A stretch of DNA of 64,000 bases from Cyanophora paradoxa CCMP329. Its lineage: Eukaryota > Plantae > Glaucophyta. Positions 7,834-61,113 of this stretch are shown piece after piece. The position numbers and the translations under genes are program-made. The stretch spans positions 62,001 to 126,000 of the forward strand of contig QPMI01000508.1 of the NCBI GenBank assembly GCA_004431415.1. The letters run 5' to 3'. The notes under the pieces were generated by a model that was given only the letters and a program-made list of their open reading frames with translations, searched no databases and had not been told where the DNA came from. Each line of letters starts with the position of its first letter. Position 1 is the first letter of the stretch.

Positions 7834-9750
7834 ATGGACAGCGAGATGATCCGGCTCCGCACCGCGTTCGCCCAGGCCCTGCCGGCCGTCCGCATGGCAG
7901 CCAGCGTCGTGCTTCCGGGCTCGGCCAGGACCTCCGCCGTGTCTCGCCAATCCGCCGTCCAGCGCGAGCTGCGGCGTGGCGGGCGCTCGTTCGTGGCCGG
8001 CAGTGCAGCCTCATTCCTGCCCATGGGCCGCTTCTTCCGTGCGTGCCACCACCTGCGCGCGTGCCAGATTCTTCCCTATCGAGCCCCGGCCGCGCGCCAG
8101 AGGCGTCCACGCTGCGTAGCTAGCTTAGCTTAGGGTCGTGTCGAGCTCTACTAACGCCGGCGCAGAGGCCCGCCTCGCGCAGGCGATGCGCGTGAGCACG
8201 TCGACGTCGGCGGCTACCACGTGCTCAGCGGCTCCGTCGGGGGTGACCGACAAGCAGTTGTCGCTTGAAGAGATCATGAAGATCGTCAAGACCCCGTCCC
8301 CGCAGAACAACGTGACCGACTACATCGCTGAGAAGATCGGCACTGACCTGCACATGCGCCCCAACCACCCCCTCGGCATCATCAAGGACAAGATTCAGAA
8401 GCACTTCGAGTCCGCGCACCCCGGCGTCTTCAGCATGTTCGACCGCCTGCCGCCCATCGTGTCGGTTCAGGCGAACTTCGACGACCTGCTCGTGCCGGCG
8501 GATCACGTGAGCCGCTCCTCGAATGACACGTTCTACATTACGGAGGAAACCATCCTGCGGTGCCACACGAGCGCGCACCAGACGGAGCTGCTGCGCCGCG
8601 GCCTCAAGGCGTTCCTCTGCACGGGCGACGTGTACCGGCGCGACAGCATCGACGCGACGCACTACCCGGTCTTCCACCAGATGGAGGGCGTGCGCGTCTT
8701 CGAGCAGGCGGAGTGGGAGGCGGCCGGCGTCTCGGCCCTCGAGCTCGCCGAGAAGGACCTCAAGAAGACCCTCGAGGGCCTCGTCCGGACCCTCTTCGGT
8801 GCGGCCGCCCGGCGCCGGCAGCACGCGCGGGGCTGACGGCGGGGGCGGGGCAGGCGAGGTGGAGATGCGGTGGGTGGACGCCTACTTCCCCTTCACGGAG
8901 CCGTCGTTCGAGCTGGAGATCTTCTTCAAGGGCGAGTGGCTGGAGGTCCTCGGCTGCGGCGTCGTCCGCCAGGAGATCCTCGACGCCTGCGGCATGGGCC
9001 ACCTCAAGGCCCGCCCCCGCACCGCCCCGCCCCGCCCCTCTTCTTTTCCTTCCTTTTCCCGACGCGCCGGGCGGGGCAGGGCTGGGCCTTCGGGCTCGGC
9101 CTGGAGCGGCTGGCGATGGTGCTCTTCGACATCCCCGACATCCGCCTCTTCTGGAGCGACGACACCCGCTTCACCAAGCAGTTCACCGTGCGCCGCCCCG
9201 CCCCGCCCCGCCCCGCCCCGCCCCGCGCGGGGCGCGAGCGGGGCGCAGGCGGGGAAGATCACCAAGTTCAAGTCGTACAGCAAGTTCCCGCCGTGCTACA
9301 AGGACATCGCCTTCTGGATCTCCCCCGAGTTCACCGAGAACAACTTCTGCGAGGCGCCCCCGCCTGCCCCGCCCTGCGCCCCGCGCCCCCGCCCCGCCGA
9401 CGCCCCGCCACAGCTGGTTCGCGGCATCGCCGGCGACCTCGTCGAGGAGGTCAAGATGATCGACGGTGCGGCGGCGGGGCCCCGTCGCGCGGCTGCGCCC
9501 GCGCCGGGGGTCGAGCGGCGGGGGCGCAGAGTTCACGCACCCGAAGACGGGGAAGACGAGCCAGTGCTTCCGGATCTCTTACCGCTCCATGGACCGCTCG
9601 CTCACCGACGAGGAGATCAACGACCTCCAGGCCCGCCCCGCCCGCCCCGCCCGCCCCGCCCCGCCCCGCCCCGCCCCGCGCTGAGGGCGGGGCGCGCAGG
9701 CCTCGGTCCGCGAGCGCGTCGCCTCCGAGCTCAAGGTCGAGCTCCGGTGA
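7834..9750 (+). CDS. FARS2: Monomeric organellar phenylalanyl-tRNA synthetase with targeting presequence
   Basis: [84 protein letters not shown] and a C-terminal FDX-ACB domain. Introns 8799-8853, 9009-9079, 9188-9248, 9354-9413, 9466-9529, 9631-9699. Confidence 0.97.
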
Positions 9751-9852
9751 CCGGCCCCGGCGCCCGCCCGCCCGCCCCCTCCCCGACCCTCCCGCCCCCC
9801 GCCCCGGCCCGCCCCAACCCTCCGCCCAACCCGAAGTGCACAGTCCGCTTGC

Positions 9853-10903
9853 TCAGCTGGAGACGGGGGGCGGGCGGGGCGCGGGGGCGGGGCGAGGGCG
9901 GGGCGGAGGGCGCGGAGGACGTCGTCGGCGAGGGCGTCGGGCCCCGGGACGGCGGCCCAGTCGAGGCCGAAGCGGGCGAACTCGCGCCGGGCCAGCGGCG
10001 TGTCCACCAGCCCCGGCTCGAAGAGCAGCGCCCGCACGCCCCGCGCCCCGCACGCCTCCCCGCCCCGCCCCTCGCTCCACGCCCGCACCTGCCCGCCGGC
10101 GGCCGTCGGCCCCGGGAGAGGAGGGCTCGAGCCTGGAGGCGGGCGCACGAGGGCCATGCTCTCCATGTAACCGCGCTCGTTGTCCGTCGCCCCGGGCCCC
10201 TCCCGCGCCTCCATCGCCTCCTTGAACCCCGGCTGCCCTGCCCCCGCCCCGCCTCAGCAGCCCGAAGACGGGCCCGTGGGAGGGCGTCGCGAAGCGGCGT
10301 GTGCGCATGCGCACCGGCCTGCGATCCGATGTTGACGACCACGCCGCCCTGCGCCATGGACGGCAGCAGCAGGTCCACCAGGTTCCGCTTGCTTTCGTAG
10401 TTGACCGCCAGCAGCCGCGCGCGCACCGCCGCCGCCCCGCCCCCGCCGGCATCGTCGTCCCACCTGCGCGGGCTGTTGAGGAGCGCGCGCGGGGCTCTTC
10501 GGCGTGCTTGCGCGCACATGAACGATCCCGCGGAGTTGACGACGACCCGGAGGGGCTCGCTCTGGGCCCGGACCAGCTCCTCGAGCGCCGCGAGCTGGGC
10601 GCCGTCCGTAACGTCGGCGGGGTGCGCGCGCGCGAGCTCCCTTCCAGCTTCTGCAGAGCGTAAAAAGGTGGAGCGTTGTTTCACCCTGCTCCTTGATGGC
10701 CGCGGAGGCCCGCGGAGAGTGCGCGCGGCGATCGCACCGGTGTTGATGCGGTTGGCGGCAGCCTGCAGTTCAGCGGGGCGCCTCGCAACGAGCAGCACCC
10801 GCATCTGCAGCTCAAGGCAGAGCCTGCGCGCGATGGCGAAGCCGATGCCGTCGCTGGCGCCCGTGCACACGGCGAGGCCGCCGCTTGTGCTGGCGCCGGC
10901 CAT
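9853..10903 (-). CDS. Short-chain dehydrogenase/reductase (3' end uncertain)
   Basis: TGASDGIG cofactor motif, [30 protein letters not shown]. Catalytic motif reads YMESM. Confidence 0.85.
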
Positions 10904-14804: not shown

Positions 14805-15330
14805 ACAGCTGCAGCGCCGCTGCAGGCTGCCAGCGGGCCAGCGCGCGCCTGCGCCATCCGCAAGGCCGAGCTCGCGAGAATTCCGGGATTCCGGTACCCG
14901 GTTCCGCAATTGCCTGTCACAGTCACTGAGTGTCTCAGAGTCGCTTTTTCTAGCTCCGATCCGATAATCCTGTAAATTCCTTTCCGGATTCTATAGCTAT
15001 TCAGCCAGCTGCAGAGCTTCAAATTCTGATGATCATGATCAGCCTGCGCTAGTAACTTTAGTAATGTAGCCTAGTTGATTTGGAAGCCGCGTCGCTTCAT
15101 GGCAAAGTTCGTCTGATGAGTGTAAAGCAGATCGATCTGCCAGCTAGCCTTAAGCTTGTAGCTTCGAGAAATGCTCAGCGCAGTCATCTCATTATCCCGT
15201 AGGCTAGTTGTCTGTATCGACTCGCTCTGTTTTGATCAGTGCTAGGCCCCATTTTGGCCGTGAAGCTCGGCAGAACCTGTAACCGTTCGTGTGTGCTGCG
15301 AATTAATTCTACGATCGCAGCGCGCCTGGG

Positions 15331-18300
15331 CTAGACGAAGAGAACGCCTGGCGGGGCGGGGGGCTGCTTGGGGCGGTTCGCGGCCTCGAAGAGTGCGCGC
15401 GCCTGCGCCTCGAGGAGCGTCCGCTTCTCCTTGTTCCAGGCCGTCCAGCCCGGCGCCCCCTCCTCCGCCTCCAGACCCGCATCGGGCGGCGGGGGCGGCG
15501 AGCCCTCGTGCCGCGCGAGGGCCGCAGCCACTGCCGCCGCCGGGCCCCGCACGATGGACGGCGCGAAGAGCTCCGCCCGCGTCTGCCGCCCCGCGTCCGC
15601 CGGCGCCAACAGACCGGCCGGGCCGGGGCGGGGCGGGGCGGGGCGGGGCGCACGCCGACGTGGCTGAGCATCGGGGCGCAGTACTCCTTGAGGTCGGGCC
15701 GCTCCGATGGGCGAGCTTCGGGGGAGGGGCGGGGGCGGGGCCCAGCCGCGGGCCTCCCCGAGCGGCTGGCGGGGTTGGCGCGGGCCGGCGGGCGGAGGAG
15801 GAGGCGGTTGATGGCACGGGCGCGGCGCTCGAGCTCGTCGCTCGTCGGCGGCCTTCGCATCGGCGACGCGTTCCCCGCCAGCCGCGGGTCCCGCGGCGGC
15901 GACCCCGCCCCGCCCCTCCCCTGCCGCCCCGCCCCGCCCCCGCCGGCGTCGCCGGCGCCGGCGACGGCACAGCGAAGCTGCGGCGAAGTCAGGCGGGAGG
16001 TGGAGGGGCGGGCGGGGGCGGGGCGGGCCGTGGGAGCGGAGGTAGGGGAGTGGGAGGCGGGGATGGCGCGGGAGGGCGGAAAGTGCGGCAGCTGCGGCTG
16101 CCCGACGCGGTGCGGCAGCGTCGCGCTCGGCGCGCTCCCGCTCCGCGCCAGCGATCCCGCGCCGCTGGAGCGCAGCGAGGCGGCCGATGCGCGCCCCGAG
16201 GCCCCCGCCGGCCCGCCCCCGCCGCCATGAAGTGCAGCCGCGCCAGCGAGGGCCCCCGGGGCCCCGCCGCGCCCACCGGCCGTCGCTGGGCGCGGGGGCC
16301 CGAGGCGGGGCCCAGGGCGGTGCCGCCCACGGTGAGGTCCGGGGCGGTGGAGGCGCGCGGGCCGAGGGCGGCGGCGAGGGCCCGGGCGACCTGCGCGCGG
16401 GGGCGCGTGAGCGGGGCTCGCCGGGGCGGGGGCCGGGGCGGGGGCGGGGGCGCGCACCCCGGGCGGAAGTCGTCGGGGAGGCCGAGGGCGGCGAGGAGGG
16501 CGTGGGGGATGGGCGTCGGGGAGGCGGCGTCGGGCGGGTCATCGTCCCGCCAGCGCCCGTCGATGCTGACGCGCAGCGCCCGCGGCACGTGCCGCGGCAG
16601 CGCCGCCGGCATCGACGGCATCCGCTCCCCGCCGCCGAGGGGCCCGCAGGCGCGGGGCCCGAGCCGCGCCGCCGCGACCCCGCCGACGACGAGGCGCCCC
16701 GGGGCTCCGCGGGCCCCCGCGCGACCCCGGCCCCAGGCCCGCCGCCGCGGTCAGCGCCGGCACCTGCACCCGCGGGGGCGTCGGCGGCAGCCCGCGCCCG
16801 CCGCCGCCGCCGCCGCGCTCGAAGGCCGCGACGCGAGCTTCGAGCTGCCGGCGCGGGAGAGCGGGGCCGCCCCGGCGGCGGCCTCCGGGAAGTGCGTGGG
16901 AGAGGGGCGGCGGCCTCGCAGGCGGCCGCCTCTGTCGCCGCGCGCGACCGCTCCTCCGCCGCCCGCGCCTCCAGCGCCCGCCGCAGCGCCTCCTGCCGGC
17001 CCGCCTCAGCGCAGGCGGGGCGAGGGGGGCGGGGGGAGGAGGGGGGGGGGGGGGGGGGGGGGGGGCGGGGCGGGCGCACGGAGCGGAGGAGCGGGGCGGC
17101 GGCGAGGGCGTACCGCAGCAGCCGCGCGTGCTGCCGGGGAGGTACCCCTCCCGCAGCGCCCGCCGCACCTGCCGCCCCCGCGGCGCTCAGCAGCGCCGGG
17201 GGCCGCGGGGCCGGCGGGGAGGCACATCGACGGGGCGGGCGCGGACGGTGTCGGGGGCGGCGGCGGGGCGGCCTCCGCCTCGGCCTCCTCCCCGCCGGCG
17301 CCTCCGGATCCGCCGACTGCGGCCGCCGCGTCGGGTGCGGGGAGGGGAGGAGGGCGGGAGGGGCACCTGGAGGGCGGCGATGACGGAGCGGGCGGCGCTG
17401 CCGGCGCGGCGGCGCTCCTCGTCGAGCGCGCGGAGGGCGGCCGCGAGGCCAGCCCCGCCCGCCAGCAGGCCCGCTGCCGCCCGTCGGCCCTTGCGGGGCG
17501 GCGGGGCGGCGGTGCGGCGGGGCGGGGGCACCGGCGAAGCAGGCGGCGGCGTCCAGAAAGGTGTCGACCTCCCGCGCCTCCAGCGGGCCCGGCCCCGCCC
17601 CCTGCCGCCCCTCGCGCCCCGCGGCGGCGGCGGGCGGGAGGGCGGGGCGGGGCACCAGCCGGGGGGCAGGCGGCCGACGCCGCAGCGCTCGCGGGCGAAG
17701 GTGAGGGCCTCGGCGGCGCCCCGCACGAGCCGCTCCGCCGCCGCCGCGTCCCGCTCGGGGGCGGGCCCTCCCCGCGGCCCCCTTCCAGCCCGCGTGGCCC
17801 ACCGCTGCGCCCCGCCTCAGCGACGCGCAGCAGGCCCGGGGGCGGGCGGGGCGCGGCGGGGCGCACGACGCTGCTGGGCTCGGCATCCCCGTCGGGCGCC
17901 GCAGCCGGGTGCGCCCCCGAGCCCTGCCGCTCCTCGCCCGACGACGAGCTCGATGCGCCGCCGTCTTCTTCCGCGCCCGCTGCCCCGTCGAGGCTCCGCT
18001 CAGCGCCCCCGCGGCGGAGGCCTGCAAGCCCCGCGCACCGGGCTCAGCCTCCGTGGCCGGCCTGCGCCCCAGGCCCAGCGGGACAGTCGCTCCCGGACGG
18101 ACGCCTGGGGCGGGGGCTCAGGGATCGGGCTCAGAGGCGAGAGCGCAGGCGTCCCGCACCGTCCAGCTTCCTCCACGCCGCCGCGCCGGTCCTCTCGTCG
18201 CGCACGGTGACGGCGGCGAGCAGGCCGCGCAGGAAGCGCTCTTGCCTGGCCACAGCGGTCAGCCGCGCGGCGCGTCGGCAGGAGCAAAGCACGGAAACCT

Positions 18301-18684
18301 TCTGCTTGACGACGGGTCGCACCAGACCGCAGCTGCAGCGCGCGGGGGTCGGAGGTTGCAGATGAGCGCTTCGGTGGCGTTACCTGTGTCTCGCAGCGCC
18401 GACGCGAAGCGATCGATCTCTACATGCGTTCCCTCGCCCCTCAGCGCGTCCCAAAGCTCTGCAGCAGGTGCCCTCAGCGAGACAGCTCGCGTGGCAAGCT
18501 GCAGCGGCCCACCAGATGCAGCGCGGCGAGCAGCGGCCTCGTCAAATGCTGTACGCGTGACAAGCGCCTTGTGCACCCCCGTCCAGGCTTGCAGGAAGCT
18601 TTGCTCGGCCACGCCTGATTGGGACTCGCCCGGCTCGCCCTCGCCGGGCGGCGGCGGGCCCACCAGCGCCAGCCAGGCCTGCAT
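15331..18684 (-). CDS. Large Ala/Pro-rich hypothetical protein (multi-exon; start uncertain)
   Basis: Coding-like minus-strand exons (QSFLQAWTGVHKALV; LEAREVDTFLDAAACF; LRVSIDGRWRDDD; DLKEYCAPMLSHVG; GWTAWNKEKRTLLEAQARALFE) separated by CCCCG-type introns. Confidence 0.45.
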
Positions 18685-18964
18685 TCTGCGCCCACTAAGC
18701 CTAACCGCGCGGGTCCCCGGCTGCAGCTAGGCGCTCGGTGGTGTACCCCTGCCGGCGGCTTGGCTTGCGTCATCGGGCGAGCGCGCTCGCGTAGATATCG
18801 AAGTGCAGGACAGGTTAGCGGCTGGGTTCGAGCAGCGCGCCGCGCGAGGCCTCCGAGCTCGGCGGGGCAACTCTTGGGGCGGCAGCTGGCGCGGCCCTTC
18901 CGCGGCGGTGGCGTCGACCAGCGGAGAAGGTCGTTGAGGCAGAGCGTGGCCCTTGCAGATCGCA

Positions 18965-20907
18965 ATGCGGCCCCTCGAGTGCGCCCTTCTCGTGCTGAGC
19001 GCCGCGGCGTCGGTCGTGGTGGCCGTCAGCCCGCCCGTCCCATTCGCGATCAAGGCGCTCGCGCTAGTAGGCCAACTTCTCCCTGGCGCGCTGCACCTTC
19101 TCTTTGAGGTGAGCGCCCCGCCAGAGCCCTCTCGCGACGGTTCGTACGCGCGCGTGACGCGTGCCAACGCGATTGCAGGGGGCGCGCTGGCAGATGTACG
19201 CCGCGTACGGGTGCGCCGCGGCGCTTCTCACACGCCTCTTCGTCGCCTCGCTGAGTCACCGCATCGGCAGTGCGGGCGCGCTCAACACGGGGGCGCTCGC
19301 GGCGACGGTCCGGGGCGCGGTTGAGCTGCCGCTCGCGGCGCGCGTCGCCCTTCCCGCGGCGGCGCTGCTGCTGCTGGCGGCGTCGACGGCGCTGGCGGCG
19401 CTGCTGCCCGTGCTGGGCCCCGGGATGTACCCGGCGCTGGGCCCGTACCGCGTGGGCGCGCGCTACGTGCACTCGGCGGCGGCGTACAAGGACGACCGCC
19501 TCGGGCGCGAGCTCTCCGGCCTGCTCTTCTACCCCTCCGCCCCCGCCGCCGGCTCCGGCTCCGAGTCCGCCGTCCTCGTCCCCGAGGGCACCTTCATCTC
19601 CGACGCCGGTACCCCCCCCACCCTCTCGCGGGACGGGGCGGGCTGAGCCGGGGGCAGTGGCGCGGTTCGCGAAGATGCCGGCGTTCATCTTCAGCCACAT
19701 GCGCCTCTTCCGCATGCCGGCGGCGATGGACGCGCCCCTCCTCCAGGCGCACCCCCCGCGTCCGCCCCCGCCCCGCCCCGCCCCGCCCCGCCCTGCCCCG
19801 GGCCCCGCGAGGGCTGGGCCGACCTGGCGGCAGCGGACGGGCGGCTGCCGGTGGTGCTGCTGCTGCACGGGCTCGGGGGCTTCCGCGGCGTCTACTCGGC
19901 CCTCGCCCTCGGCCTCGCCTCCCGCGGCTTCCTCGTCCTCGCCCTCGACCACACGTCCGCCCGCCCGCCCCGCCCGCCCCGCCCGCCCCGCCCCGCCGAC
20001 GCGCGGGGCCGGCAGGGACGGGAGCGCGGCGGCGGTGCGGTACCCGTCGGGGCGGGTGCGGGCGTACGAGGTGCCGGCGGAGCCGCAGGAGTCGCACGAG
20101 GAGATCTGGCACCGCTTCCGCGGCCGCCAGCTGCAGGAGCGCGTCGAGGACGTGCGCGCCGCCTGGCATTACCTCGAGGCCCTCGACAGCGACGCCGGGC
20201 CCCTCCCGTCCGCCCGCCCCCCGCCCCGCCCTGCCCGCCCCGCGCGCCGGGGTTTGACGGGGGCGGGGCAGGGACTTCCGGGGGCGGCTGGACCTGCAGC
20301 GGACGGCGCTGGTGGGCCACAGCTTCGGGGCGTGCACGGCGCTGGCGGCGTGCCACGCGCTGCACCCGACGTTCAGCGCCGGCGTGGGGCTCGACGTCTG
20401 GATGTACCCCGCCTGGGGCAACGAGCCGCTGCTCCTGCGCGACGGGCCCCTCGTCCCCTTCGCCTTCGTCGACTCCGAGAAGTGCCTCGCCCGCCCCGCC
20501 CGCTGCCCGCCGGCGCGGGCTGAGGCGGGCGGGGGGCGGAGGTGGGTGTACGAGCCGAACGAGGCCCGCACGCAGGAGATCTTCGAGCGCAGCCCCACGG
20601 GCTCCCTCCGCGCCACCCTCCGAGGCCCGCCCCGGCCCCGGCCCCGGCCCCGGCCCCGGCCCCGGCACGGGGCGCGACGGGGGCGCAGGGGCGGGCCACC
20701 AGTCCTTCTCCGACTTCGGCCTCTTCGCCGGCTTCGTCCTCCGCCGCATGCGTCCGCCCGCCCGCGCCCCGCGCCCGCCCCCGCGGCCTCCCCCGAAGCG
20801 GGGCGGGCGGGGCGCAGGGCAGGTGGGCGAGGTGGACGCGCGGGGGCCCTGGCCACGACGGCCGCCTTCGCCGCCGCTTTCATCCGCCGCCACGCCCTCA
20901 AGGTCCG

Positions 20908-20946
<39 letters not shown>

Positions 20947-24415: not shown

Positions 24416-24629
24416 TGTGAACGAACAACGAACTGCAACGATCGATCGGATCGACTGGCGAGGCCCGCGCGCAGCGACTTCGCGGCACCTACACGCGCGC
24501 ACCTGGCTCTCCTGTGACACCGTACCCCTAGCGGGGATTGAAAGGGGCAGCCATGCGCAGCAGCCCGCAGCCTTGCCGAGGCCGCCTCTAGCTGCGCTAT
24601 CGCTTCTCTTATATAATTAGCTTTAGCGG

Positions 24630-48194: not shown

Positions 48195-51100
48195 TCACGG
48201 GCAGAGCTTGCGGAGGCACGAGTTGCAGGCTGCGGGCGCGGGGTGAGCGAGGGGGCCAGCGGCGGCCGGGCGGGGCGGGCGGGCGGGCGCACTCTCGTCC
48301 TCGACGACGCCCTGCTGGCCGTAGGGGGAGAGCGGGTCCGCCGCGGGGCGGAACTGGCTCGAGCCGTACGCGCTGCCGGTGCGCGACGTGTTGCCGTACA
48401 TCGACATCGGCCTGCGCGCGGGACGGCGTCGGCGGCGCCGGCGGCGGGGCGGGGCGGGGCGGGGCGGGGAGGGCGGGGAGGGCGGGGCGGGGCGGGGCGG
48501 GCGGGGGGCGGACCCCATGGACATGGCGTTGGGCTCGCCGACGGGCCCCCGCGTGGAGGCGTACTCGTAGACGTAGGCGTTGAGCGCGGGGTCGAAGCGC
48601 TTGGTGTACTCGCTGCGGTTGCCGATGCGCATGCCGACGTGGCCCCAGACGTCGACGAGGTAGGGCCAGATCTGCCACATGAACTGCACGAGGCAGAGGA
48701 CGAAGAGCCAGAAGGCGAGGAGCTTCCAGAGGGCGCAGGAGAGGCCGCGGTTGCCGCCGTCGAGGGCGATGGAGCGGACGATGAGGAGGGCGATCGCCTC
48801 GACGATGCACGTGATGACCTCGATGACCGTGTTGAGGGTGCGCGCGAAGGGGCGGGCGACGATGAGGTAGACGACGTGGACGGCCTCGAGGACGAGGAGC
48901 GTGATGCACTGGCGCGGGGCGTCCGAGCCGAGGCCGAGCACCGCCGCCTGCACCAGGCGCTTGCCGAGCTCGACGGCGGGGAGGTAGAGGAAGCCGCCGA
49001 AGCGGGCCGTGTACTTGCGGAAGAGCGAGCCGTGCATCTTGTGGAAGCTCTCGCCGCCGCGCGCCGCCTGCCAGACGCCGACGACGCCGAAGAGGCCGCT
49101 GCTCTGGTAGCGGAAGTTGGCGAAGCGGGAGAGGGCCTTGCGGGCGACGTTGACGAGGAGGAAGAGGAGCAGGAGGCCGACGACGGCCGTCACGAAGAGG
49201 ACGACGATCCACGCGACGACGACCTTCCAGTCGGTGCCGCCGCGGTGGTACGGGGAGCCGTGGAAGCGGAGGACGCGGAAGGCGTGCAGCGCCGCGCCGT
49301 AGGCGAGGGCCGCGAAGACGTAGTAGATCATCTTCCACCAGGAGCGGCGGCCGGAGACGTGCTCGCGGCGGTGCGCGGGGATGCAGCAGGTCTTGTACGC
49401 CATCACCGCCAGCAGGCCGAGCACGGGGACGACGAGGAGCCAGACGAGGGACCAGGCGGCGTTGTTGTCCGACCAGAGGTAGAGCTGGTCGATCGGGCAG
49501 CGGTTGTCCTCCGAGGGGAGGGGCTCGCTGCGGTAGATGAGGTGGCCCGGGTAGGCGTCGCGCATGGGCTGGTTCTTGAGGGGCAGCCAGTGGAAGGCCC
49601 AGTGGAAGACCGAGTAGAAGGAGATGAGGCAGCGGTCGAAGCTGACGTCGAAGGAGACGAGCGAGGCGATGAAGAGCACGAACATGATGACCGAGAGCTC
49701 GTTGCCGAGCTTGTTCCCGTACATCGCCGCGAGGATCGCGCACGCGATGCTCATCCACACGAGGCCCGTCAGCACCGAGGCCGCCAGCGCCGGCGGGTGG
49801 TCCTTCACCGCCTTGGTGATCTCAACGCGGTACGCCGCCCTGCGCCGAGACGCGCCGTCGGCCGCCGCCGCGGGCCCGAGGGCGGGCGGGGGGCGGGGGC
49901 CGGGCCGCGCACGCGTCCTTGAGGCTCTGCGAGTCCTGCACCTGCAGCACGAAGTCGTACGTGCCGGGGCGGACGTTGCAGATCTGCCGCCCGGCCCCGC
50001 CCCGCGTCGGCGACGGAGAATGGCCGCGCGCGGGGCGGGGCGGGGGGTCACCTTGAGCTTGGGGTCCTCCGGGGGCGTGCCGGTGGCGCGGAGGATGGCG
50101 GGGTCGGCGCCCTCGGGGCCGGCCACCTGCGTCCACTTGTACGCTGCCCCCCGCCCCGCGTCGGGCCGCGCCGCGCCACACGGGGCGGGGCGGGGCGGGG
50201 GCGGGGCGGCGGACCGCGGACGTCGTTGTTCTTGTCGAGGACCTTGCCGCGGATGTCGAAGCCCTTCTCGTGGTTGCCGAACATGTCGAACTCGTACACT
50301 GCCGGCCCGTCGGCCCCGCGAGGCGGGGGCGGGGGCGGGGGCGGGGGCGGGGGCGGGGCGCACGGCCGGCGAAGTTGGCGCCGAGGGAGCGGACGGCGCC
50401 CGTGTCGTGGACGATCTCGGGGCCCTGGGCCGGGGCTGCGCGCGCCCCCCGTCAGCGGACCGGCGGGCCGGCGCGGCGGGCCGCGCACTGGGCGAGGGGG
50501 ACGGCGTGGGCGAGGGGCTCGGGGAGGGGCTCGGGCTCGGGCTCGGGCTGGGGGAGGGGCTGGGGCTGGGGGACGGGCTCGGGGACGGCGACGGGCTCGG
50601 GGCTGCCCCGCGCGTCGGCGGCCGGGCGGTGGGGCCTAGAGGGCGGGCGGGGCGGCGCACTCGGCGGCAGGCTCGGGCTCGGCGTCGGCTCGGCCTCGAT
50701 CTTGGCGGGAAGTCTGCGGGGCGGGGAGGTGAGGCGGGGCGGGGCGGCCCGGCGAGGCGAGGGGGGCGCGCACAGTGGGCGGCCGACTTGTAGGCGTAGT
50801 TGGAGAAGACTGCGGGGCGGGGGCGGGTGAGGGGGCGGCCCGGGACGGGGCGGGGCGGGGCGGGCGGGGGCACCCTCGATGTCGCCCTCGGTGTCGCCGC
50901 GGATGGTCGGGGGGGCCTCCACGTGCACCTGCCCCCGCCCGTCGGCCGGGCCGCCGCGGGAAGCAGGTGCGGGGCGGGGCGGGGCGGGGGCGGGAGCGGG
51001 GGGCGCACCCAGTTGACGCCCTGGCCGTGGAGGGCGGCGGGGAGGTTCTGGATGCGGACCTCGCCGATGTCCGTGCCGGCGCCCAGGTTCTCGCCTGCCG

Positions 51101-53298
51101 GCCGCCCCGCTCGGGCTCCGCGCGGAGGGGCGGGGCGGGACGGGGCGGTGCGGGGGGGGCGGACCCATGATGACGACCTGGTCGCCGGGCTTGATGGAGA
51201 CGGACTTCTTGGCGGTGCGCGAGCCTGGCAGGAAGACGAGCACGTTCTTGATCACGCCTGCGCCCGCCCTCCGCCGTCAGCGGGGCCGCGCGGCGTCGGG
51301 GCGGGGCGGGGCGGGGCGGGGCGGTGCGGGCCCTGGGCGACGACGCGGCGGATGGCGCGGTTGTTGGCGTCCGCGACGTAGAGCACGCCGTTGATGCGGT
51401 CCAGGTACATGTCTGCCCGGGGCCCCCCCGTCACGCCCCCGCCGGCAGCGAGGCGCCGGCCGGCCGGCGGCGGGGGCGGACCGGAGGGGCCGTCGAAGGA
51501 GACGGCGGAGCCCTGGCCGTCGGCCGAGCCGCGCGAGCCGCCGGCGATCAGCTCCGGCTCCTTGCCCGGCACCACGCCTGCGCGGCGGCCCGGCTCGGGC
51601 GGCGGCGGCCCGGCGGGCGGGGCGGCGGGGGGCGGGCGGACGGTAGATGGCGTTGTTGGCCGTGTCGCAGGCGAAGAGCAGGCCTGGAGCGCGCGGCGTC
51701 AGGTCTGCGCTCGAGGCGCGGCGCGGGGCTCGCGGAGAGGGCGCACCGTTGTACGAGTCGGTGGAGACGGCCTGGATGCTGGGGGTCTCCGAGCGGGCGG
51801 GGAACCGCACGTCCTTCATCTGGCCTGCGCCCGCCACCCCGCGTCGGCCCGCCGCCCGCCACGCACGCGCGCAAGTCCGCCGGGGCGGCGGTGGAACGAA
51901 CCGGCCATGCCGTCGAGGGCGGAGAGCTTCTCGGCGCCGTAGGCGACGTAGACGAAGTTGGTGCGGAAGTTGTAGCTACGCCGCCCCGAGTCGCACGGCG
52001 CCCCGGCGCTGCGGGGCGCGGGCGCGGGCGAGGCCGGCGGCACCTGATGCCCTGGATGGTCTTGCCGCGGTAGTAGCCGAGCGAGTCGGGGATGAGGGTG
52101 TCGACGGAGATGCCGCCGGCCTTCTTCGGGTCTGGAGGCGGCGTCAGGCGCCGCCGCGGCGGGCGGGGCCCGGGCGGGGCGCGGGGCACCGTTGGTGGTG
52201 ATGCGGACGACGCGCTCGCCGTCGCTGCCGGCGGGGCCGCCTCGGCGCCGGGCGCGCGCGAGGCGGGCGGGTGGGCGGGGCCGCACCCGACGTAGAAGGT
52301 GCGCGAGGCGCGCTCAAGGAAGAGGAAGGAGAGCTCCGCGAAGCCGCAGTCGGTCGCCCCGCCGTCCTTGCTCACGCGCTGGCCCGAGCCGGCGAAAGTC
52401 GTCACCGTCGCCTGGCCGCCGGCAAGAGAGATCTTCCGGATGCGGTTGTTGCCTGCCCGCCGGTCGCTCAGCACAGCGGGCGCAGAAAGGAATCAATGAG
52501 GAAGGACTAAATCACCCGCGTCGGCGACTGCGCGGGACGGGGTTAGCGGGCGCGGAAGGGAGGACTGGAGAGCGAGGAAAGGAACGCGGACCGTAGAGGA
52601 TCTTGTTGATGGTGTCGTAGGCGAGGTCGACCGGCCTGGTCGCCACGTCGGTCGAACCGCCCGCGGATGGGGGCGAACGGATCGGGCCAAGCTCACCGGT
52701 TGAACATGGCGCTCGCCGCCACGACGTTGTCGACGAAGCCAGCCGCCTGGCTGCCGGCCAGAACCGTCGGATTGCCAGCGGCGTCCAGCTTGTAGATCTG
52801 GCCATCGGGGCGTCGGTTACGTTGTTCCGGATTCTCAAACTGAAGATCGGGAACGATGAGCTTTGCCGCAAGACTGCACCTGGTTGGAGTTCTCGAGGAG
52901 GACATAAACCGTCGATGTCGCGTCGTCCACCGTAAGAGCAATCGGGCGAGCCGGCAGGTTCGATGCAACGGTCGACGTCGTGCCGATAACCCTGTGGCGA
53001 AAGAGGCGGGTGCGTCAGCCAGCTAGCCGGTCCGACCGTCGACGTAGCGAATCGTTCAAATCGACGCTGGGGCAGGGGTTGGGGCAGCGCACTTCTCGGC
53101 CGGCGGAGCCGCCATGTGGTCGTAATCGACTGCGAAGGCGAGCCGGGTCAGCCGGTCGCACGGCGAAAACGATGCGCCGAGTAACGGCTGAGGTAACCGG
53201 GCCGCACCATCCTGTGCTTCGAGCGTGTCCGACGGCCCGGCGAGCGCCGTCGTGGCCAGAAGGGCCACGAGGGCGACGCAGATCGCCCAGCGCCTCAT
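48195..53298 (-). CDS. Cell-surface protein: signal peptide, NHL repeats, (SP)n stalk, PKD-like domain, TRP/FLC-like multi-TM domain
   Basis: MRRWAICVALVALLATTALA; TVLAGSQAAGFVD...MFNRPVDLAYD; NNRIRKISL...VTTFAGSG; LYVADANNRAIRRV; SPSPSPSP; YKWTQVAGP...GTYDFVLQVQDS; HGSLFRKY...ELGKRLVQAAVLGL...YLIVARPF. Confidence 0.8.
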
Positions 53299-53450: not shown

Positions 53451-54432
53451 ATGCCTGGAGCGCCCCTCATCGGCCTGACGACGTCGTACGAGGCGCCGGA
53501 GCAGAAGATTCGGCGCGAGTACGTTTCCAGCGTCGCGGTGCGCAGCGAGGGCCGCGTCGGCGCTCGGCCTCGCCCGTCGCACTCGAATTCTTCGAGCCTG
53601 TCGTGCGCAGGAGGCCGGCGGCGTGCCCATCATCCTGCCCATGATCGATGACGAGGCGCTGCTGGGGCAGCTGCTCGAATCGCTCGACGGGCTGGTCGTC
53701 ATTGGCGGGCCTGCAATTACTATGGCGCGCGCTCCACCGCCGCTGTCCCGGCCCTCGCCGGCCGCCAACGGGTGCGCAGGGGCTCGTCGGAGATGTGCCG
53801 GCGGACCTGTCGCCGACGGACCCGCTGCGCACGGAGAGCGACCTGCGGATCGTGCGGGCGGTGCTGGCGACGCCGAAGCCGATCCTAGGGATCTGCTACG
53901 GGATGCAGCTGCTGAACGCCCTCGCCGGCGGCACAATCTACGCCGACGTGCAGAAGCAGGTCCCCGGCACCATGGTACACAGGTGCGGCCCGCGCGCAGC
54001 CCACGGCCAGCGGCCGGCGTGGCGAGCGCCGCGGCAGCGCGTCGCGGGGCGGGACGGTGCATCCGGCGCGGGTGGAGCGGGGCACGCGGCTGCACGCGCT
54101 GCTGGGCGGGCGGGACGAGGTGGAGGTGAACACGGTGCACATCCAGGCCGTCGCCGAGGTCGGCGGCGGCGACCTCAGCGCGCCCCGCGCCCCGGGCGGC
54201 CGCCTGCGCGTCAACGCGCGCGCCCCCGACGGTGCGCCGGCCGACCCCGACCGAGCGGGCGGGGCGGGGGCGAGCGGGCGGGGGTGCAGGGGTGGTGGAG
54301 GGCCTGGAGAGCGAGGACGGGCGGGTGATGGCGCTGCAGTTCCACCCGGAGCGCCTCGGGGCGGACATCCGCGTGCCCCTCTTCCGCGACCTCGTCCAGC
54401 GCGCCGCCGCCTTCCGCGCCTCCCGCTCCTAG
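53451..54432 (+). CDS. Peptidase C26 / gamma-glutamyl-GABA hydrolase-like class I glutamine amidotransferase
   Basis: PLIGLTT, AGGVPIILP, LDGLVVIGG, KPILGICYGMQLLNALAGGTIY, VNTVHIQAV, APDG|VVEGLE, LQFHPE. Confidence 0.9.
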
Positions 54433-54627
54433 CGCACCGCCCGCCCCGCACCCCGCCCCGCACCCCGCCCCCCCCCCCTCCCCCTCCCCCCCCCCTCTCT
54501 CTTCCTCTTCCCCCCCGCCCCTCTCGTGCCCCGAGACGCGGCGCCGAACCGAACCGAACCCGGGTATTCGAAGGCGGGCCGGCTGGGCCGGCTGCGGGGC
54601 GGGGCGGGGCGTGCGGGGCGGGCGGGG

Positions 54628-56699
54628 CTAGGCCTTGGAGCGGAGGGCGGCGTCGAGGAGCTTGCCGTCGACGGCCGCGCCGCCGGCCGCCAGCAGCGGG
54701 CCGAGCTCCAGCTTCCACCTGCCCCCGCGCCCCCGCCTCGCTCGGTCGGGCCGGCGGGGCGGGGCGGGGCGGGGCGGGGCGGGGCGGGCGGACGCGTCGG
54801 CGAGGAAGGCGGCGAGGCCGCCCGGGGGCAGCTGGAGGGCCTCCTCCAGCCACGCCGCCTCCACCTCCGGCCGGTACCTGCCCGCCCCGCTCGCCCCCGG
54901 CCCCGCACCGGCCCGCCCCACGCCCCCGAGGCGGCGCACGAGCGGGCGGCGGCCCGGAGGGCGGCCCGGCGGGTGCGCGCGGCGAGGGGCTCCGCCAGGC
55001 GGCGGAGGAGGGGCCGCGCCCCTCGGCGGCGGCGCAGGCGCGGAAGAATGCGGCGTAGTTCCCGCCCCGCGCCGCGAGCACCATCTGCGCGCGCGGCGCT
55101 CGCCCCGGCGGCGGGGGCGGCGGGGCGGGGCAGGCGGGGGCGGGGGCGGACGCGGGAGGCGAGGCGGACGGCGGGGTGGTCCTCCAGCCCGAGCTCCGAG
55201 GCCGTCCGGAAGGCACGCGCGAGGTCTGGCCCCGCCCTCAGCCGCGCGCCACGCGGGGCGGGGCGGGGCGGGGCGGGGCGGGGCGGGCCGGCGGCGAGGC
55301 CGTGCGTCTCGGCGTAGACGAGGCGGTAGGCGAGGTACTCGGGGAGGGGGTCCCCCTCCCCCGCACCGGGGGCGAGGCCCCGCGCGAAGAGCGCGAAGAG
55401 CTGCGCCTGGCACTGGTTGAAGCCGTCGGTGTCGCCCTGCTCGATGCACATGCGCCCGTGCGCGACGTACACCTCCACCGCGAACTCGTTCCGGATCCCC
55501 TGCACCTGCCGCCCCGCCCCGCCCGTCACCGCCGCGCGTCCCGCCGAGCCCTAGCACTGCGCTGGGAGGAACCGGGGGCGCGCCGTCATGTCCTGGCGGA
55601 TAGAGCGCATCTGGTCGTTGACCCAGTGCCAGGTGGCGCCGCCGCCGGCGCGCCGCTCCCGCACGTGCGCCAGCGCCCGCTCCAGCACCCGCTGCGGCCG
55701 CACCTCCGCCGGGTCCGGCGCCTGGCCCGCCCCACCGGACCGCCCGCTCGGGCCGCGCGGGGCCGGGGCCGGGGTGGTGGGGCGGGGCGCACGGAGGTGA
55801 GGCGGAAGTAGGGCTTCTCGAGGGCGGCGCTGGTGCCGACGATGGGGGCGTGGTCCGACGCGTCCACGGACCCCTCCTCCGACGCCCCGTCCATCCCCAG
55901 CTGCCGCCCCGTCGGCCCCGCCCCGCCCGCCCGCCCCGGCCCCCGCCCACCTGCATCGCCCGCATCCGGCTCTGCAGCGCCGAGACCGCCCCCGGCCCGG
56001 CCGCCCGCGCCCCGGGCGGCTCTGCGAAGCGCCTCGCCCGCCGCTCCATGCGCACGCGGTCCTCGTCCTCGATCCGCGAGCCCGACCCCGAGCCCGAGGG
56101 GCGGCCGCGGCCCGAGGGCGGCCGGTAGCTGCGAGGGGGCTCGTGCGAGCGGCGGACGCGCGAGAGCCTGCCGGAGGGCACCTCGGCCTCATGCCGTCAA
56201 GCCACGCTTCGATGTCCTCCACAAAGGACTCCTCGCCCGTCCGAGCGTGCTTCTCGGCCCGCGGGTCAACTCCGGCTGCTTCCCTGCTCGCCCCGTTAGC
56301 TTTCGCCGCACGCCGCACGCTGGGGTTGCAGGCACGCACCTGGGCCGCTTCTGCCTCTCTGCTGGACGACGCGGGGCGCGCAGGCACCGGAGCCGGAGCG
56401 AGAGCGGCAGGCCGACCCCGCCGGCCCAGCTGAGGCGCCTCGCGCCCGGGAGCGAGGCCGCGATTGGTTTCTCGACTCTGCGCACGAACTTGTGAGCGCA
56501 GCGGGCGTGCGCGAGGGCTCGCGTACGTGCGATCTTCCTGATCGGGTTGCGGCCTCGGTCCGCGCAGGCAGCGCAGCCTGAACCACAGGCGCGTGTACCG
56601 CAGCGTCTTCGCGTCCAGGGTCGAAGAAAAAGCGCCGATCGGCTCGCCGGGCCGCTTCCTAGGCAAAGACTGCTTGCTTCTGGGTACAGCTGCACTCAT
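54628..56699 (-). CDS. LENG8: SAC3/GANP/Thp3 family protein, LENG8-like (start uncertain)
   Basis: IVGTSAALEKPYFRLTS|APDPAEVRPQRVLERAL, DQMRSIRQDMT|VQGIRNEFAVEVY..HGRMCIEQGD..FNQCQAQL, EYLAYRLVY, GNYAAFFR. Confidence 0.85.
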
Positions 56700-58834: not shown

Positions 58835-59063
58835 GGCCTCCTTCTTCGCTGCTTCTTCGCGTCAAACTTGGTCGGGGCGGAGGATCCCTGGGCTGCGCGT
58901 ACGCGGGCACTCGCTTCTTCGCAAAATGTCGGGGGGAGCAAACTGTGCGGGCGTACGCGAATCGCGAGTGCACGGGACCTCGTGGGCGTCCGAGCGCGCG
59001 CGCAGCGAGTGGAACCGAGAGTGAGCATCCAGAAGGTGCCGCGCGCTGCGGCGGGGGGCCGCG

Positions 59064-61113
59064 ATGGAGCTCCTCAGCCTAGCGCTCCTTGTCTCCGGCG
59101 GCTTCTCGTTTGCGGCGATTGTTGTCTCCTTCTGGAACATATACCAGCACCTGTGTTACTACACGAAGCCGCAGCGCCAGAACCGCATCATCCGAATCCT
59201 CTTCATGGTCCCCGTGCGTCCGCGCGCGCGCCCGACCCCACAAGGCGCTCACAGAACGCGTCCGAGCTGCGTCCGTCGCCTGCGTTCGCGCCGCGGCCGG
59301 CCGCGATGGGCCGCATCTGCCCTTGCGCGTACGGGCGCGTTGACGGCAACGCCGCCCGCAGATCTATGCGTTCCATTCGTGGGTCTCGCTGTTCTACCTG
59401 CCCGCTGGCAAGTACATCAGCGCGATACGGGACTGGTGCGGCGCGGCGCGGCCGCGCGGCGGCGCCGGGCAGGAAAGTGGTCGAGCTGAGGCGGCGGGCG
59501 CAGCTATGAGGGGTTCGTCATCTACCAGTTCTTCCAGCTCCTGCTGGACTTCCTCGGCGGCGAGGAGCGGCTCGTCCCCGTCCTCGAGTCCAAGCCCCGC
59601 TTCAAGCACATCTTCCCCTTCCACCACCTGCAGCCGTTCCGCCCCGGCCGGTGCGGGCCCGGCGCGGGCGCCGGCGTGCGGGCGGCGGGGCTGACGGGGG
59701 GCGGCGCAGGGAGTTCCTGATGCGGTGCAAGCAGGGGACGCTGCAGTTCGTCTTCGTGAAGCCGTTCATGGCCGTCCTCGCGTTCTTCCTCGAGGCCCGC
59801 CCCGCCCCGCCCCGCCCCGCCCCGCCCCGCCCCGGCCGCGCGGCGGGGGGCGACGGGGCGGGGCGGGGCAGGTGTTCGAGGTGTACGACGAGGGCCACCT
59901 GCAGCTCGACCGCGGCTACCTCTACATCACCCTCGTCGACAACGTCACCGTCACCGTGCGCCGGGCCCCGCCCCCGCCCGCGCCCGTGCGCCCGTGCGCG
60001 GGGCCGAGCGGGGGCGGGGGGGGCCAGGTGGCGGTGTACTACCTGCTGCTCTTCTACCTGGTCTGCCAGCACGAGCTCGTCCCCTACGGGCCCGTCCCCA
60101 AGTTCCTCTGCATCAAGGCCGTCGTCTTCTTCTCCTTCTGGTGCCCCCGCCCCGCCCCCGCCCCAGCCGCGAGGCGGCCCGGCGGTGACGGGGCGGGGGG
60201 CGGGGGCGCAGGCAGGGGGTGCTGATCGCGCTGCTGGTGAAGGTGGGGGTGATCAGCTCGCGGGGCCCCTTCGGGCCGTTCGACGTGCGGGACATCGCGA
60301 CGGGCATCCAGAACTTCCTCATCTGCCTCGAGATGCTCGCCGCCGCCATCGCCCACCTCTCCGCCTTCTCCGCCCACGGCCCGCCCCGCCCCGCCCCGCC
60401 CCGCCCTCCTGCGACGCGGGGCGGGGGCGCGCAGAGTACCAGCCGAGCGGGACCCTCTCCGAGGACGAGGAGAGCATGCACAGCCGCGAGACGGTGCGCC
60501 CCGCCCCGCCCGCGGCGGCCCTGGCGCGGCCGACTCCGGCGGGGGCGGGGCGGGCAGATGCCGCTGCTGAAGGGGATCGGGTCGGCGCTGGCGGTGAGCG
60601 ACGTGCTGGAGGAGACCTACGAGACCTTCCTCGCCCGCCAGCGCGACCCCGGTCCGCCCGCCCCGCCCCGCCCCGCCCCGCCCCGCCCCGCCCGCTCGCC
60701 GCCGACGGCGCGGGGCGGAAGACCGGCGGGAGCTGCGACACTTCGTCTCGCACCGGCCCGAGGTCCTCGCCAAGCGCCGCGAGCAGCAGGCCCGCCCCGC
60801 CCCGTCCGCCCGCCCGCCCGCCCGCCGGGCTGACGCGCGCCGCAGCGGGCGCAGCAGGCGGCGGACGCGGAGCGCCGCGCCCGCGCCGAGGCCGCCCTCC
60901 AGCACGGCGGGGGGCCCTCCCCGGCGCGACCCCCGCCGACGCCGCCGTTGGCGCCGCCGGCGAGCCCTCGGGGGCGGCCGTCGACGAGGCGGGGGTGGGC
61001 CCTCGCTCGGCTCCCAGCTGCTCCCCATCGCCCGCGCCCCGGCGGCCGGGGCCCCGGGCCCCCCCGCGGGGCCCGTCGCCCCTCCCGCCCCCTCGCCGGC
61101 CCCCGCACGATGA
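59064..61113 (+). CDS. TMEM184: TMEM184/OST-alpha (LAZ1-like) transporter (3' end approximate)
   Basis: IYQHLCYYTKPQRQNRIIRILFMVP|IYA, IRDC|YEGFVIYQF, CKQGTLQFVFVKP, PVPKFLCIKAVVFFSFW|QG, IQNFLICLEM. Confidence 0.93.

Follow-up and report, generated by a model that had tools for sequence, protein, structure and literature searches.

The window analysed here, 64,000 nt of the Cyanophora paradoxa genome, carries genes interrupted by short introns, of which 109 with lengths of 45-110 nt were predicted (features discussed below are listed in Table 1). Their median length is 64 nt, with 78 of the 109 in the 55-75 nt class, their GC content is 87%, and the donor dinucleotide is GT in 78% and GC in 22%. 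The gene finder recovered 11 of 13 verified junctions and misses introns that are stop-free and divisible by three in length. In the PheRS gene, intron 9188-9248 is flanked by exons matching tRNA-synt_2d 212-246/246 and FDX-ACB 1-22 in Pfam. The latter exon lies upstream of 9354-9413, which the gene finder took as exon because it is stop-free and a multiple of three in length; downstream, past a 17-aa exon that is too short to search and the intron 9466-9529, FDX-ACB continues at 50-77. The exon with this last match precedes 9631-9699, an intron whose basis is the gene model, with no bracketing by Pfam. In the Ostalpha/Solute_trans_a-like gene, where the intron 59956-60027 was overlooked by the gene finder, the exons match contiguous Solute_trans_a positions (70-112, 121-147, 149-175, 176-212 and 214-264), the last two of which flank 60141-60211.

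Between 19 and 24.3 kb, 14 introns are skipped in RNA-like contigs from three runs (X1, X4 and X7); in X17, a DNA-like run, the listed spliced joints are without support. Four of the 14 junctions were deduced from exon pieces (Table 1), one of them after a shift of 6 nt to reach GT..AG ends; for another, the pieces 20016-20207 and 20272-20481 share one contig in X1 and likewise in X4. All 14 introns are GT-AG or GC-AG. The first-pass annotation had proposed that such gene-body segments are introns with a C-rich start and a G-rich end and had suggested mapping their junctions by RNA. The 14 junctions and the contiguous Pfam coordinates confirm that they are real introns, and the composition it described is present in the sequence at the places it named. 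Three of its examples (9188-9248, 9354-9413 and 60141-60211) are bracketed by Pfam matches, while 9631-9699 has the gene model only.

Table 1. Genes, introns and exon discussed in the text, with positions in the window
Feature	Positions	Strand	Basis or remark
PheRS gene model, class II, mitochondrial-type, at least 7 introns	7834-9750	+	gene model and Pfam
61-nt GT-AG intron of PheRS gene	9188-9248	+	(CCCCG)n 5' arm, G-rich 3' end
60-nt GC-AG intron, C-rich throughout, without G arm	9354-9413	+	Pfam
69-nt GC-AG intron, long (CCCCG)n arm, CTGAG branch motif, G-rich end	9631-9699	+	
RNA-supported intron	19609-19657		from exon pieces
RNA-verified 64-nt GT-AG intron, both arms	20208-20271	+	exon pieces in one contig
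Highly expressed gene, 13-14 introns, 12 with RNA-contig-verified ends	21584-24415	-	
RNA-supported intron	21612-21669	-	from exon pieces
Internal exon with G-to-C synonymous polarity	21670-21935	-	ends RNA-verified
RNA-verified 68-nt GC-AG intron, both arms	21936-22003	-	joint in X1, X4, X7; none in X17
RNA-verified 64-nt GT-AG intron, both arms, CTGAC branch motif	22198-22261	-	joint in three RNA runs
RNA-supported intron	22330-22397	-	joint in RNA contigs
RNA-verified 76-nt intron, C arm, C-rich 3' end, without G arm	22424-22499	-	
RNA-supported intron	22642-22715	-	from exon pieces, ends shifted 6 nt
RNA-supported intron	22953-23018	-	joint in RNA contigs
RNA-supported intron	23310-23362	-	joint in RNA contigs
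RNA-supported intron	23455-23530	-	joint in RNA contigs
RNA-supported intron	23702-23758	-	joint in RNA contigs
RNA-verified 58-nt second intron, GC 60%, without C arm	23851-23908	-	joint in X1, X4
RNA-verified 341-nt first intron, GC-AG, GC 59%, armless	23955-24295	-	joint in X1, X4
Ostalpha/Solute_trans_a-like membrane protein gene, at least 8 short introns	59064-61220	+	gene model and Pfam
71-nt GT-AG intron, both arms, best fold-back case	60141-60211	+	Pfam-bracketed

Composition of introns and of synonymous exon sites

Across the 109 introns C makes up 55-70% of positions +6 to +30 and G about 60% of positions -10 to -6. As the first-pass annotation had described, the tracts have strong positional preferences with respect to the splice sites: CCCC runs number 174, 165, 87, 16 and 8 in successive fifths of the intron and are mostly confined to its first 60%, and GGGG runs (8, 9, 23, 65 and 71) lie mostly in the last 40%. 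The C arm, at 25-45 nt, is far longer than the G arm of 10-15 nt. The reported flip of polarity with gene strand stands for this longer arm, since 34 of the 36 intronic (CCCCG)n tracts are sense-strand ones, and carries no information for the C-then-G order, which reverse complementation leaves unchanged. The C arm is absent from the first one to three introns of a gene and strengthens with intron ordinal, the G arm does not, and intron GC increases along genes. That introns share both arms applies to 32 of the 109 and fails for the remaining 77 (31 with the C arm only, 20 with the G arm only and 26 with neither). In the RNA-verified intron 21936-22003 the C-arm and G-arm skews are 0.44 and 0.62, and in 22424-22499, which like the Pfam-supported 9354-9413 bears out the remark that some introns lack the G arm, the G-arm skew is -0.38.

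The donor consensus is G/GYSCGCC (slash at the splice site), with C (90%) then G (83%) following G-Y-S, and would by our reckoning form about 5 pairs with canonical U1; no snRNA gene was matched by Rfam in the window. The acceptor consensus is G(91%)-C(94%)-A-G. A branch-like motif of the NNGA type (CCGAC, CTGAC, GCGAG, CYGAG) occurs in 102 of the 109 introns, in agreement with the earlier proposal, and its branch A, as predicted from sequence, has a median distance of 15 nt from the 3' end. The spacer from there to the AG consists of 54% G, 39% C, 5% T and 1.8% A, so the 3' arm is indeed G-rich, though not pure, and no polypyrimidine tract follows the branch point ahead of the 3' splice site, as had been stated. 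An extra AG in this interval was found in only 4 of 103 introns. The missing tract does not exclude membership of the U2 type, since in fungi the tract is optional or placed upstream (PMC5677156).

The polarity extends into the exons. At four-fold sites the G:C ratio is 65:31 where exons start and 19:79 where they end (p 2e-70), a skew that runs antisymmetrically from +0.36 to -0.61, with G after acceptors and C before donors; two-fold codons show no trend across exons. The same polarity is present in the RNA-verified gene (p 6e-9), as in its exon 21670-21935, where four-fold sites are G12:C8 in the first half and G4:C20 in the second. Skew at exon ends correlates with the C arm of the intron (rho 0.45, p 7e-7) and skew at exon starts with the G arm (rho 0.39, p 3e-5), whereas the C island and the G island of the same intron are uncorrelated (rho 0.03). 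On the donor side the four-fold exon sites are more skewed (0.49) than the C arm next to them (0.35); at acceptors the mean over 48 nt of exon (0.17) is slightly below that of the G arm (0.22), with 0.36 in the first exon fifth. Each donor sits in a C island that takes in, at synonymous sites, roughly the final 60 nt of the exon and then the intron's first 30-45 nt. Acceptors sit in G-rich, A-poor islands that begin at the branch point and end about 60-90 nt inside the exon that follows. C and G islands of the same intron vary independently. The acceptor layout is a CYGAC or CYGAG branch motif, a gap of 11-18 nt and GCAG/G. The combined pattern, G-to-C in exons and C-to-G in introns, is invariant under reverse complementation.

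Pairing between intron ends

The central proposal of the first-pass annotation was an RNA stem between the two arms that juxtaposes the splice sites. Mean MFE is -32.5 kcal/mol against -31.0 for dinucleotide shuffles, a mean z of -0.46 that barely exceeds the stability of the controls it had named, and z falls below -2 in just 16% of introns. Shuffles that preserve the arms remove the difference (-32.9 vs -32.5 kcal/mol, z -0.13, p 0.4). The stem thereby fails the refutation test set by the annotation itself, and it fails the others that follow. Native arms form duplexes no better than arms swapped among introns (-28.05 vs -28.52 kcal/mol, p 0.58), a comparison of little power with arms of low complexity, and both give 5.9 of 10 in-register terminal pairs. 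The donor consensus at +2 to +9 is complementary to that of the acceptor at -2 to -9, and donor and acceptor types show no covariation, which is not assessable at the unusual +4 C and -4 G since each is about 90% conserved. Ends said to pair as TGCGCC with GGCGCA are not preferentially combined: a GTGCGCC start and a GGCGCAG end occur together in 4 introns where 3.3 are expected. Exposure of branch sites and donors is no greater than that in shuffles. Predicted pairing of the first 25 nt with the last 25 nt does exceed that in every type of shuffle (10.9 bp vs 7.4-8.1, p about 1e-6).

Introns with both arms have a mean z of -1.36 and 14.9 bridging bp, with z below -2 in 41%. Such introns, with two strong arms that can fold in silico, make up about 30% of the set, the share expected under independent assortment, and arm strengths are uncorrelated (rho 0.08 to 0.13, partial -0.01; Fisher p 0.56-0.69). 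Individual cases differ widely: 60141-60211 reaches -60.4 kcal/mol (z -3.75) and 9188-9248 -40.2 (z -1.96); 9631-9699, at -35.2 (z -1.41), is equalled by 19 of 200 shuffles; and 9354-9413 has merely -11.2 (z +0.11). The RNA-verified 22198-22261, with both arms, has a z of just -0.58, and 22424-22499 one of -1.19. Introns lacking the G arm or both arms are still spliced, as the RNA contigs document for 22424-22499 and 23851-23908 and Pfam for 9354-9413.

Interpretation of the C and G islands

We consider it probable, at roughly 0.6, that these are ordinary U2-type GT/GC-AG introns, short and intron-defined, whose donors lie in C islands and whose acceptors lie in A-poor G islands; they are read as ordinary and not hairpin-defined because their ends vary independently and they fold no better than shuffles. 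Like the corresponding region of fungal short introns, the C arm may serve as a pyrimidine-rich tract, made up of C, upstream of the branch point, and could have been lengthened by (CCCCG)n slippage together with the rise in GC from 5' to 3' along genes. The 3' splice site would be the first AG past a closely placed branch point, a choice that the nearly A-free spacer would protect, and putative factors might read the islands single-stranded as splice-site context, in keeping with the other option of the first-pass annotation, proteins that bind the C and G tracts. That the donor C islands and acceptor G islands, even in synonymous positions, constitute a lineage-specific splicing code is put forward tentatively, and we hold it for rather doubtful.

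Functional bridging stems, in which pairing of the C-rich 5' and G-rich 3' parts, possibly over the whole islands, loops out the intron and joins the splice sites so that a pyrimidine tract and U2AF65 are needless, appear unlikely. The strong polarisation of CCCC and GGGG runs, the complementary consensus, the bridging pairs (10.9 vs about 8 in shuffles), the folding of the both-arm class and of 60141-60211, and the precedent of zebrafish (AC)m-(GT)n introns, which are structured and U2AF2-independent (Lin et al. 2016, PMC4691745), all speak for them. The fish introns likewise have complementary simple repeats at opposite ends with predicted bridging and no conventional pyrimidine-tract requirement, but their hallmark is that the repeats co-occur far above chance, and they form highly stable structures (PMC4691745), whereas the arms in Cyanophora assort independently, do not co-occur above chance, confer no stability much greater than that of shuffles (zero excess over arm-preserving ones), and are very unequal in length, with the splice sites inside them. 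The lack of donor-acceptor covariation and the splicing of armless introns also argue against stems, the stronger donor-side skew lies at synonymous exon sites, a poor place to build them, and a very stable GC helix over +1 to +10 and the last 10 nt would hide the splice sites.

Less probable still is a non-adaptive polarity, in which a process tied to mutation or to chromatin phasing (candidates are asymmetric repair coupled to transcription or splicing, and damage, repair or replication phased by nucleosomes) renders each strand G-rich on one side of an exon-sized unit and C-rich on the other, with arms added by (CCCCG)n slippage. The skew is carried only by freely evolving sites, its profile is a sawtooth that rises abruptly near the branch point and falls gradually across the exon, donor-to-donor spacing (mode 150-180 nt, median 189 nt) is near nucleosome size, skew jumps are seen inside intron-less exons, and intron GC climbs along genes. 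However, the islands are anchored to splice sites with no fixed period and a broad spacing distribution, a 1.3-kb exon keeps its C skew beyond the first 90 nt, first exons start without a G island and last exons have one past the acceptor, the long C repeats mostly keep to the sense strand, and no mutational basis is known for a transversion bias from G to C whose sign reverses inside 100 nt. An origin from introners or MITE-like elements, short inverted-repeat transposons that supply splice sites on insertion, is very improbable. Introners occur in other algae, and GTGCGCC...GGCGCAG resembles terminal inverted repeats, but these ends show no co-occurrence, a target-site-duplication signal is absent (shared exon/intron end length 1.24 vs 1.27 when swapped), and arm strength tracks gene position; among 137 introns we found only low-complexity similarity, with 12 weak matches left under low-complexity filtering, and no multi-copy family.

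If the islands are selected, Cyanophora would illustrate the re-encoding of intron recognition in a genome that drifts to about 70% GC, where U-rich signals are unaffordable, and would indicate that synonymous codon choice can be dominated by splicing context across most of an average exon. This would matter for codon-usage models, for the way in which U2AF and the recognition of branch points evolved in primary algae's third lineage, and for predicting genes in GC-rich protists, in which a stop-free intron with a length divisible by three is easily mistaken for coding sequence. If the islands are mutational, they would amount to a fine-scale strand asymmetry of a new kind. We found no paper on the C/G-island pattern or on a splice-site-anchored antisymmetric synonymous skew of such size.

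Several known systems share parts of the pattern. Fungal short introns have their polypyrimidine tract after the 5' splice site and ahead of the branch site (Kupfer et al. 2004, cited in PMC5677156) and resemble those of Cyanophora in the pyrimidine-rich 5' region, the CTRAY-like motif near the 3' splice site and little or no later tract; in Cyanophora the pyrimidine is C and not U, often as a (CCCCG)n microsatellite, the spacer is G-rich and GC donors reach 22%. A pyrimidine-rich 5' part and a short spacer from branch to AG are usual for fungal short introns (PMC5677156), and the modified spliceosome once invoked is not required; the earlier interpretation as a whole is partly supported, and what it specifically claimed, introns defined by a stem and a rewired spliceosome, is not upheld. 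Human short GC-rich introns (PMC4691745) also show a polarity of G and C runs and a marginal gain in stability (-113.9 vs -111.5 kcal/mol shuffled), but with 5' G triplets and 3' C triplets; in Cyanophora the order is reversed, the introns measure about 64 nt and the polarity reaches synonymous sites. Codon usage shifts with distance from exon-intron junctions in Ectocarpus and human too, where the skews described by Wu et al. (2013, PMC3787667) are purine-rich and largely alike at both exon ends, in contrast to the antisymmetric and very large skew found here. In other eukaryotes AG avoidance shapes the 3' tract (PMC10946897); in Cyanophora as well, AG is nearly absent from the stretch ahead of the 3' splice site, but here A is removed and not G, and the 3' tract is therefore free to be G-rich.

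Spliced junctions and the set of short introns

The window, from the glaucophyte alga Cyanophora paradoxa, has a GC content of about 70% and carries intron-rich genes closely spaced on both strands. The publication of the assembly puts the introns at 9.2 per gene and 86 bp on average, and leaves intron composition and structure unmentioned (PMC6704402). About 25,800 genes are annotated, at about 9 introns each. Contigs, rather than reads, from three RNA-like runs (X1, X4 and X7) and one DNA-like run (X17) were aligned to positions 19000-24999. In a highly expressed minus-strand gene, 12 segments from 21612-21669 through 23955-24295 were absent from the RNA contigs, two of them with GC-AG ends, and the plus-strand gene at 19.3-21.2 kb has two or more segments that the RNA contigs omit. 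The DNA-like run gave zero support for the listed spliced joints in this region. Four of the 14 junctions were deduced from exon pieces rather than from listed joints.

The introns given as examples in the first-pass annotation were checked by a Pfam search in which each exon was submitted singly by reference. In the Ostalpha-like gene (70-112, 121-147, 149-175, 176-212 and 214-264) and in the PheRS gene (tRNA-synt_2d to 246/246, next FDX-ACB 1-22 and 50-77), Pfam positions run on over the proposed introns. These continuing coordinates back 9188-9248, 9354-9413 and 60141-60211 as introns; 9631-9699 sits beyond the last Pfam-matched exon and is an intron predicted by the gene model.

Introns were collected with a Viterbi gene finder that scored codons by log-odds, allowed GY..AG introns of 35-400 nt and applied short matrices, trained unsupervised, for donors and acceptors. 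It has no intron-content model and therefore exerts no selection for a C-rich 5' region, often (CCCCG)n (C arm), or a G-rich 3' end (G arm). Eleven of 13 RNA-verified junctions, none of which had been shown to it beforehand, were recovered by the self-trained finder, against 5 of 13 exact for an earlier version lacking splice-site matrices. The output was 137 introns in 16 well-scoring genes, 109 of them 45-110 nt long (median 64 nt, mean GC 87%); the statistics below thus describe one window and 109 introns, mostly predicted. More than half of the short introns (57%) have no stop in any frame. Because the finder overlooks stop-free introns whose length is divisible by three, as happened with 9354-9413 and 59956-60027, both readable as coding sequence, the deficit of multiple-of-three lengths (14/109) is at least partly an artefact. 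Gene finders based on ORFs would pass over such introns, whose retention would cause no premature stop.

Some minor irregularities were seen in the contigs. Relative to the window, those of X1 and X4 carry one extra nucleotide behind 20841 and lack one at 23352, which may be assembly homopolymer errors or strain differences; the deletion falls within an intron, so some RNA contigs are unspliced. All three RNA-like runs also join 20064 to 22223, skipping 2,158 nt between two convergent genes. This joint has non-canonical TA..CG ends and only 21 nt to one side; a chimeric assembly at a common G/C repeat is its probable source.

Coordinates of introns, genes, exons and composition blocks in the window (z, public folding tool)
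Feature	Coordinates	Strand	Remark
Intron, PheRS gene	9188-9248	+	z -1.96
Intron, PheRS gene	9354-9413	+	arm-less; multiple of three, stop-free; MFE -11.2, z +0.11
Intron, PheRS gene	9631-9699	+	GC-AG; z -1.41
Intron, Ostalpha-like gene	60141-60211	+	z -3.75
Intron	59956-60027	+	multiple of three, stop-free
Intron	59795-59871	+	GC-AG
Intron	21936-22003	-	GC-AG
Intron	20903-20984	+	unbroken run of ~37 C right behind GTCCG donor
RNA-verified intron	22424-22499	-	no G arm
RNA-verified intron	23702-23758	-	neither arm
RNA-verified intron	23851-23908	-	neither arm
RNA-verified intron	23955-24295	-	neither arm
RNA-verified gene	21584-24415	-	5'-to-3' gradient
Gene	6296-7776	-	5'-to-3' gradient
Gene	48195-53115	-	5'-to-3' gradient
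Long intron-less PheRS exon	8165-8798	+	skew jump at ~270 nt
Long intron-less ZIP exon	38921-40023	+	skew jumps at ~360 and ~720 nt
TRP-like 1.3-kb exon	48516-49838	-	C-skewed throughout past first 90 nt
Convergent gene ends	9754-9919		C tract, then G tract
80-85% GC block	15300-18700		
80-85% GC block	26000-28000		
80-85% GC block	30000-32000		
80-85% GC block	40000-42000		
80-85% GC block	54000-56000		
Window end	1-2000		58% GC
Window end	62000-64000		53% GC

In the blocks of 80-85% GC, both strands have only gene models that score low or conflict, and the window ends are far less GC-rich.

C and G islands at splice sites

Among the 109 introns the donor is G-Y-S-C-G-C-C, with GC in 22%, and the acceptor is G-C-A-G, position -4 being G in 91%. 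From 5' to 3', successive intron fifths hold 174, 165, 87, 16 and 8 CCCC runs and 8, 9, 23, 65 and 71 GGGG runs. The C-then-G composition noted at first pass is thus real and strong. The accompanying claim that its polarity tracks transcription holds only for the predominance of the longer C arm; the C-then-G order itself is identical on both strands. Of 36 intronic repeats with at least three (CCCCG) units, 34 have them in sense orientation. A branch-like motif (CYGAC, CYGAG or GCGAG) stands at a median of 15 nt upstream of the intron 3' end, and the spacer beyond it is 54% G, 39% C, 5% T and 1.8% A, with a second AG in just 4 of 103 introns.

GC-AG introns make up 22-25% of introns (34/137), the two RNA-verified ones among them. 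C arms are strong where the donor is GC or GTC (0.52 vs 0.30, p = 4e-4), which fits a drift of the donor toward the CCCCG repeat unit. Contigs of the DNA-like run break at the C run of 20903-20984 and at other C/G repeats. In all multi-intron genes a gradient runs from 5' to 3': intron GC by ordinal is 0.69, 0.75, 0.82, 0.88 and 0.91 and C-arm skew climbs from 0.13 to 0.51, while the G arm is unchanging from intron 2 on. First introns are long (median 214 nt, 69% GC), and the C arm is present only from about the fourth intron onward.

The exons share this polarity. At four-fold sites of 106 internal exons the first fifth has a G:C ratio of 65:31 and the last fifth one of 19:79, a change in skew from +0.36 to -0.61 (chi-square p = 2e-70) that is visible in 85 of them; two-fold codons of the same 106 exons are trendless. 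The RNA-verified gene by itself shows +0.18 vs -0.49 (p = 6e-9). Last exons have a G island behind the acceptor, and a G island looked for at the start of first exons was absent. Exon-end C skew correlates with the C arm of the next intron (rho 0.45, p = 7e-7) and exon-start G skew with the G arm of the preceding one (rho 0.39, p = 3e-5); no correlation links the C and G islands of the same intron (rho 0.03) or the two ends of the same exon (rho 0.17, p = 0.17). The units are therefore islands centred on splice sites, not arms of a stem. In Ectocarpus and human, exon-end skews are similar at both ends (PMC3787667), whereas the Cyanophora skew is antisymmetric. This splice-site-anchored synonymous G/C polarity is a more interesting object than fold-back introns. 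As a compositional grammar the pattern is strong and genuine, and apparently unpublished; a literature search returned no paper joining Cyanophora, intron and polypyrimidine.

In the long intron-less exons of the PheRS and ZIP genes the four-fold skew jumps back from C-rich to G-rich, and these jumps may mark lost introns.

Pairing of intron ends and other origins

The C and G arms had been suggested to be the two sides of a stem that folds the intron back and implies a modified spliceosome, a reading that is not supported. Introns are hardly more stable than dinucleotide shuffles (MFE -32.5 vs -31.0 kcal/mol, mean z -0.46, 16% below -2), nor do they differ from shuffles holding the donor, branch motif, acceptor and composition of each arm constant (native -32.9, shuffled -32.5, p = 0.4); at 87% GC, any sequence folds. 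Exposure of the branch motif is slightly below that in shuffles (0.45 vs 0.50). A public folding tool was concordant, two RNA-verified introns scoring z of -0.58 and -1.19. Exchanging arms from one intron to another leaves their pairing no weaker (swapped -28.52, native -28.05, p = 0.58), in-register terminal pairs number 5.9/10 in native and swapped combinations alike, and donor and acceptor classes show no covariation. The ends GTGCGCC and GGCGCAG, proposed to pair, occur together in 4 introns vs 3.3 expected. The strengths of the two arms do not correlate (rho 0.08 and 0.13, partial -0.01), and the class sizes (both arms 32, C arm alone 31, G arm alone 20, no arm 26) match independence. Arm co-occurrence is the hallmark of fish bridging introns according to PMC4691745; the fish (AC)m-(GT)n introns described there are superficially alike, but those of Cyanophora depart from them in both respects that can be computed. 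RNA-verified splicing of introns lacking one or both arms contradicts the necessity of a stem.

Pairing of the intron ends retains some support. Predicted end-to-end pairs are in modest excess (10.9 vs 7.4-8.1 in shuffles), part of which may arise because a regular (CCCCG)n tract, unable to self-fold, has to pair at a distance, and the third of introns with both arms folds well (mean z -1.36). On the donor side, skew at free exon sites exceeds that of the adjoining intron, which an intron-internal stem would not produce. An origin of the skew in nucleosome periodicity has low odds, as distances from donor to donor vary widely (10-90% range 115-396 nt) and long exons lack a consistent skew oscillation. 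An introner or transposon origin was rejected, there being neither target-site duplications nor a sequence family beyond low complexity.

Sense-strand 3' flanks of all complete gene models are C-rich (C 40.5%, G 27.6% over 120 nt), and convergent gene ends consequently resemble an intron fold-back.

Probable short-range recognition of the introns

We consider it somewhat probable (about 0.6) that the introns are of the ordinary U2 type and are recognised through short-range signals. The branch point would lie about 15 nt from the acceptor and the first AG would be chosen, guarded by the near-absence of A instead of by pyrimidines; an A-poor spacer with first-AG use fits the AG-avoidance model (PMC10946897). 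The C and G islands may provide a single-stranded context for donor and acceptor. We favour selection over mutation bias as their origin, because the islands are anchored at splice sites and because no mutational source is known for a G/C transversion bias changing direction inside 100 nt. An Rfam search for snRNAs within the window returned 0 matches. The Cyanophora introns may function like fungal short introns: according to PMC5677156, 83% of Fusarium polypyrimidine tracts fall in the interval that separates the 5' splice site from the branch site, and five other fungi are reported to be alike.
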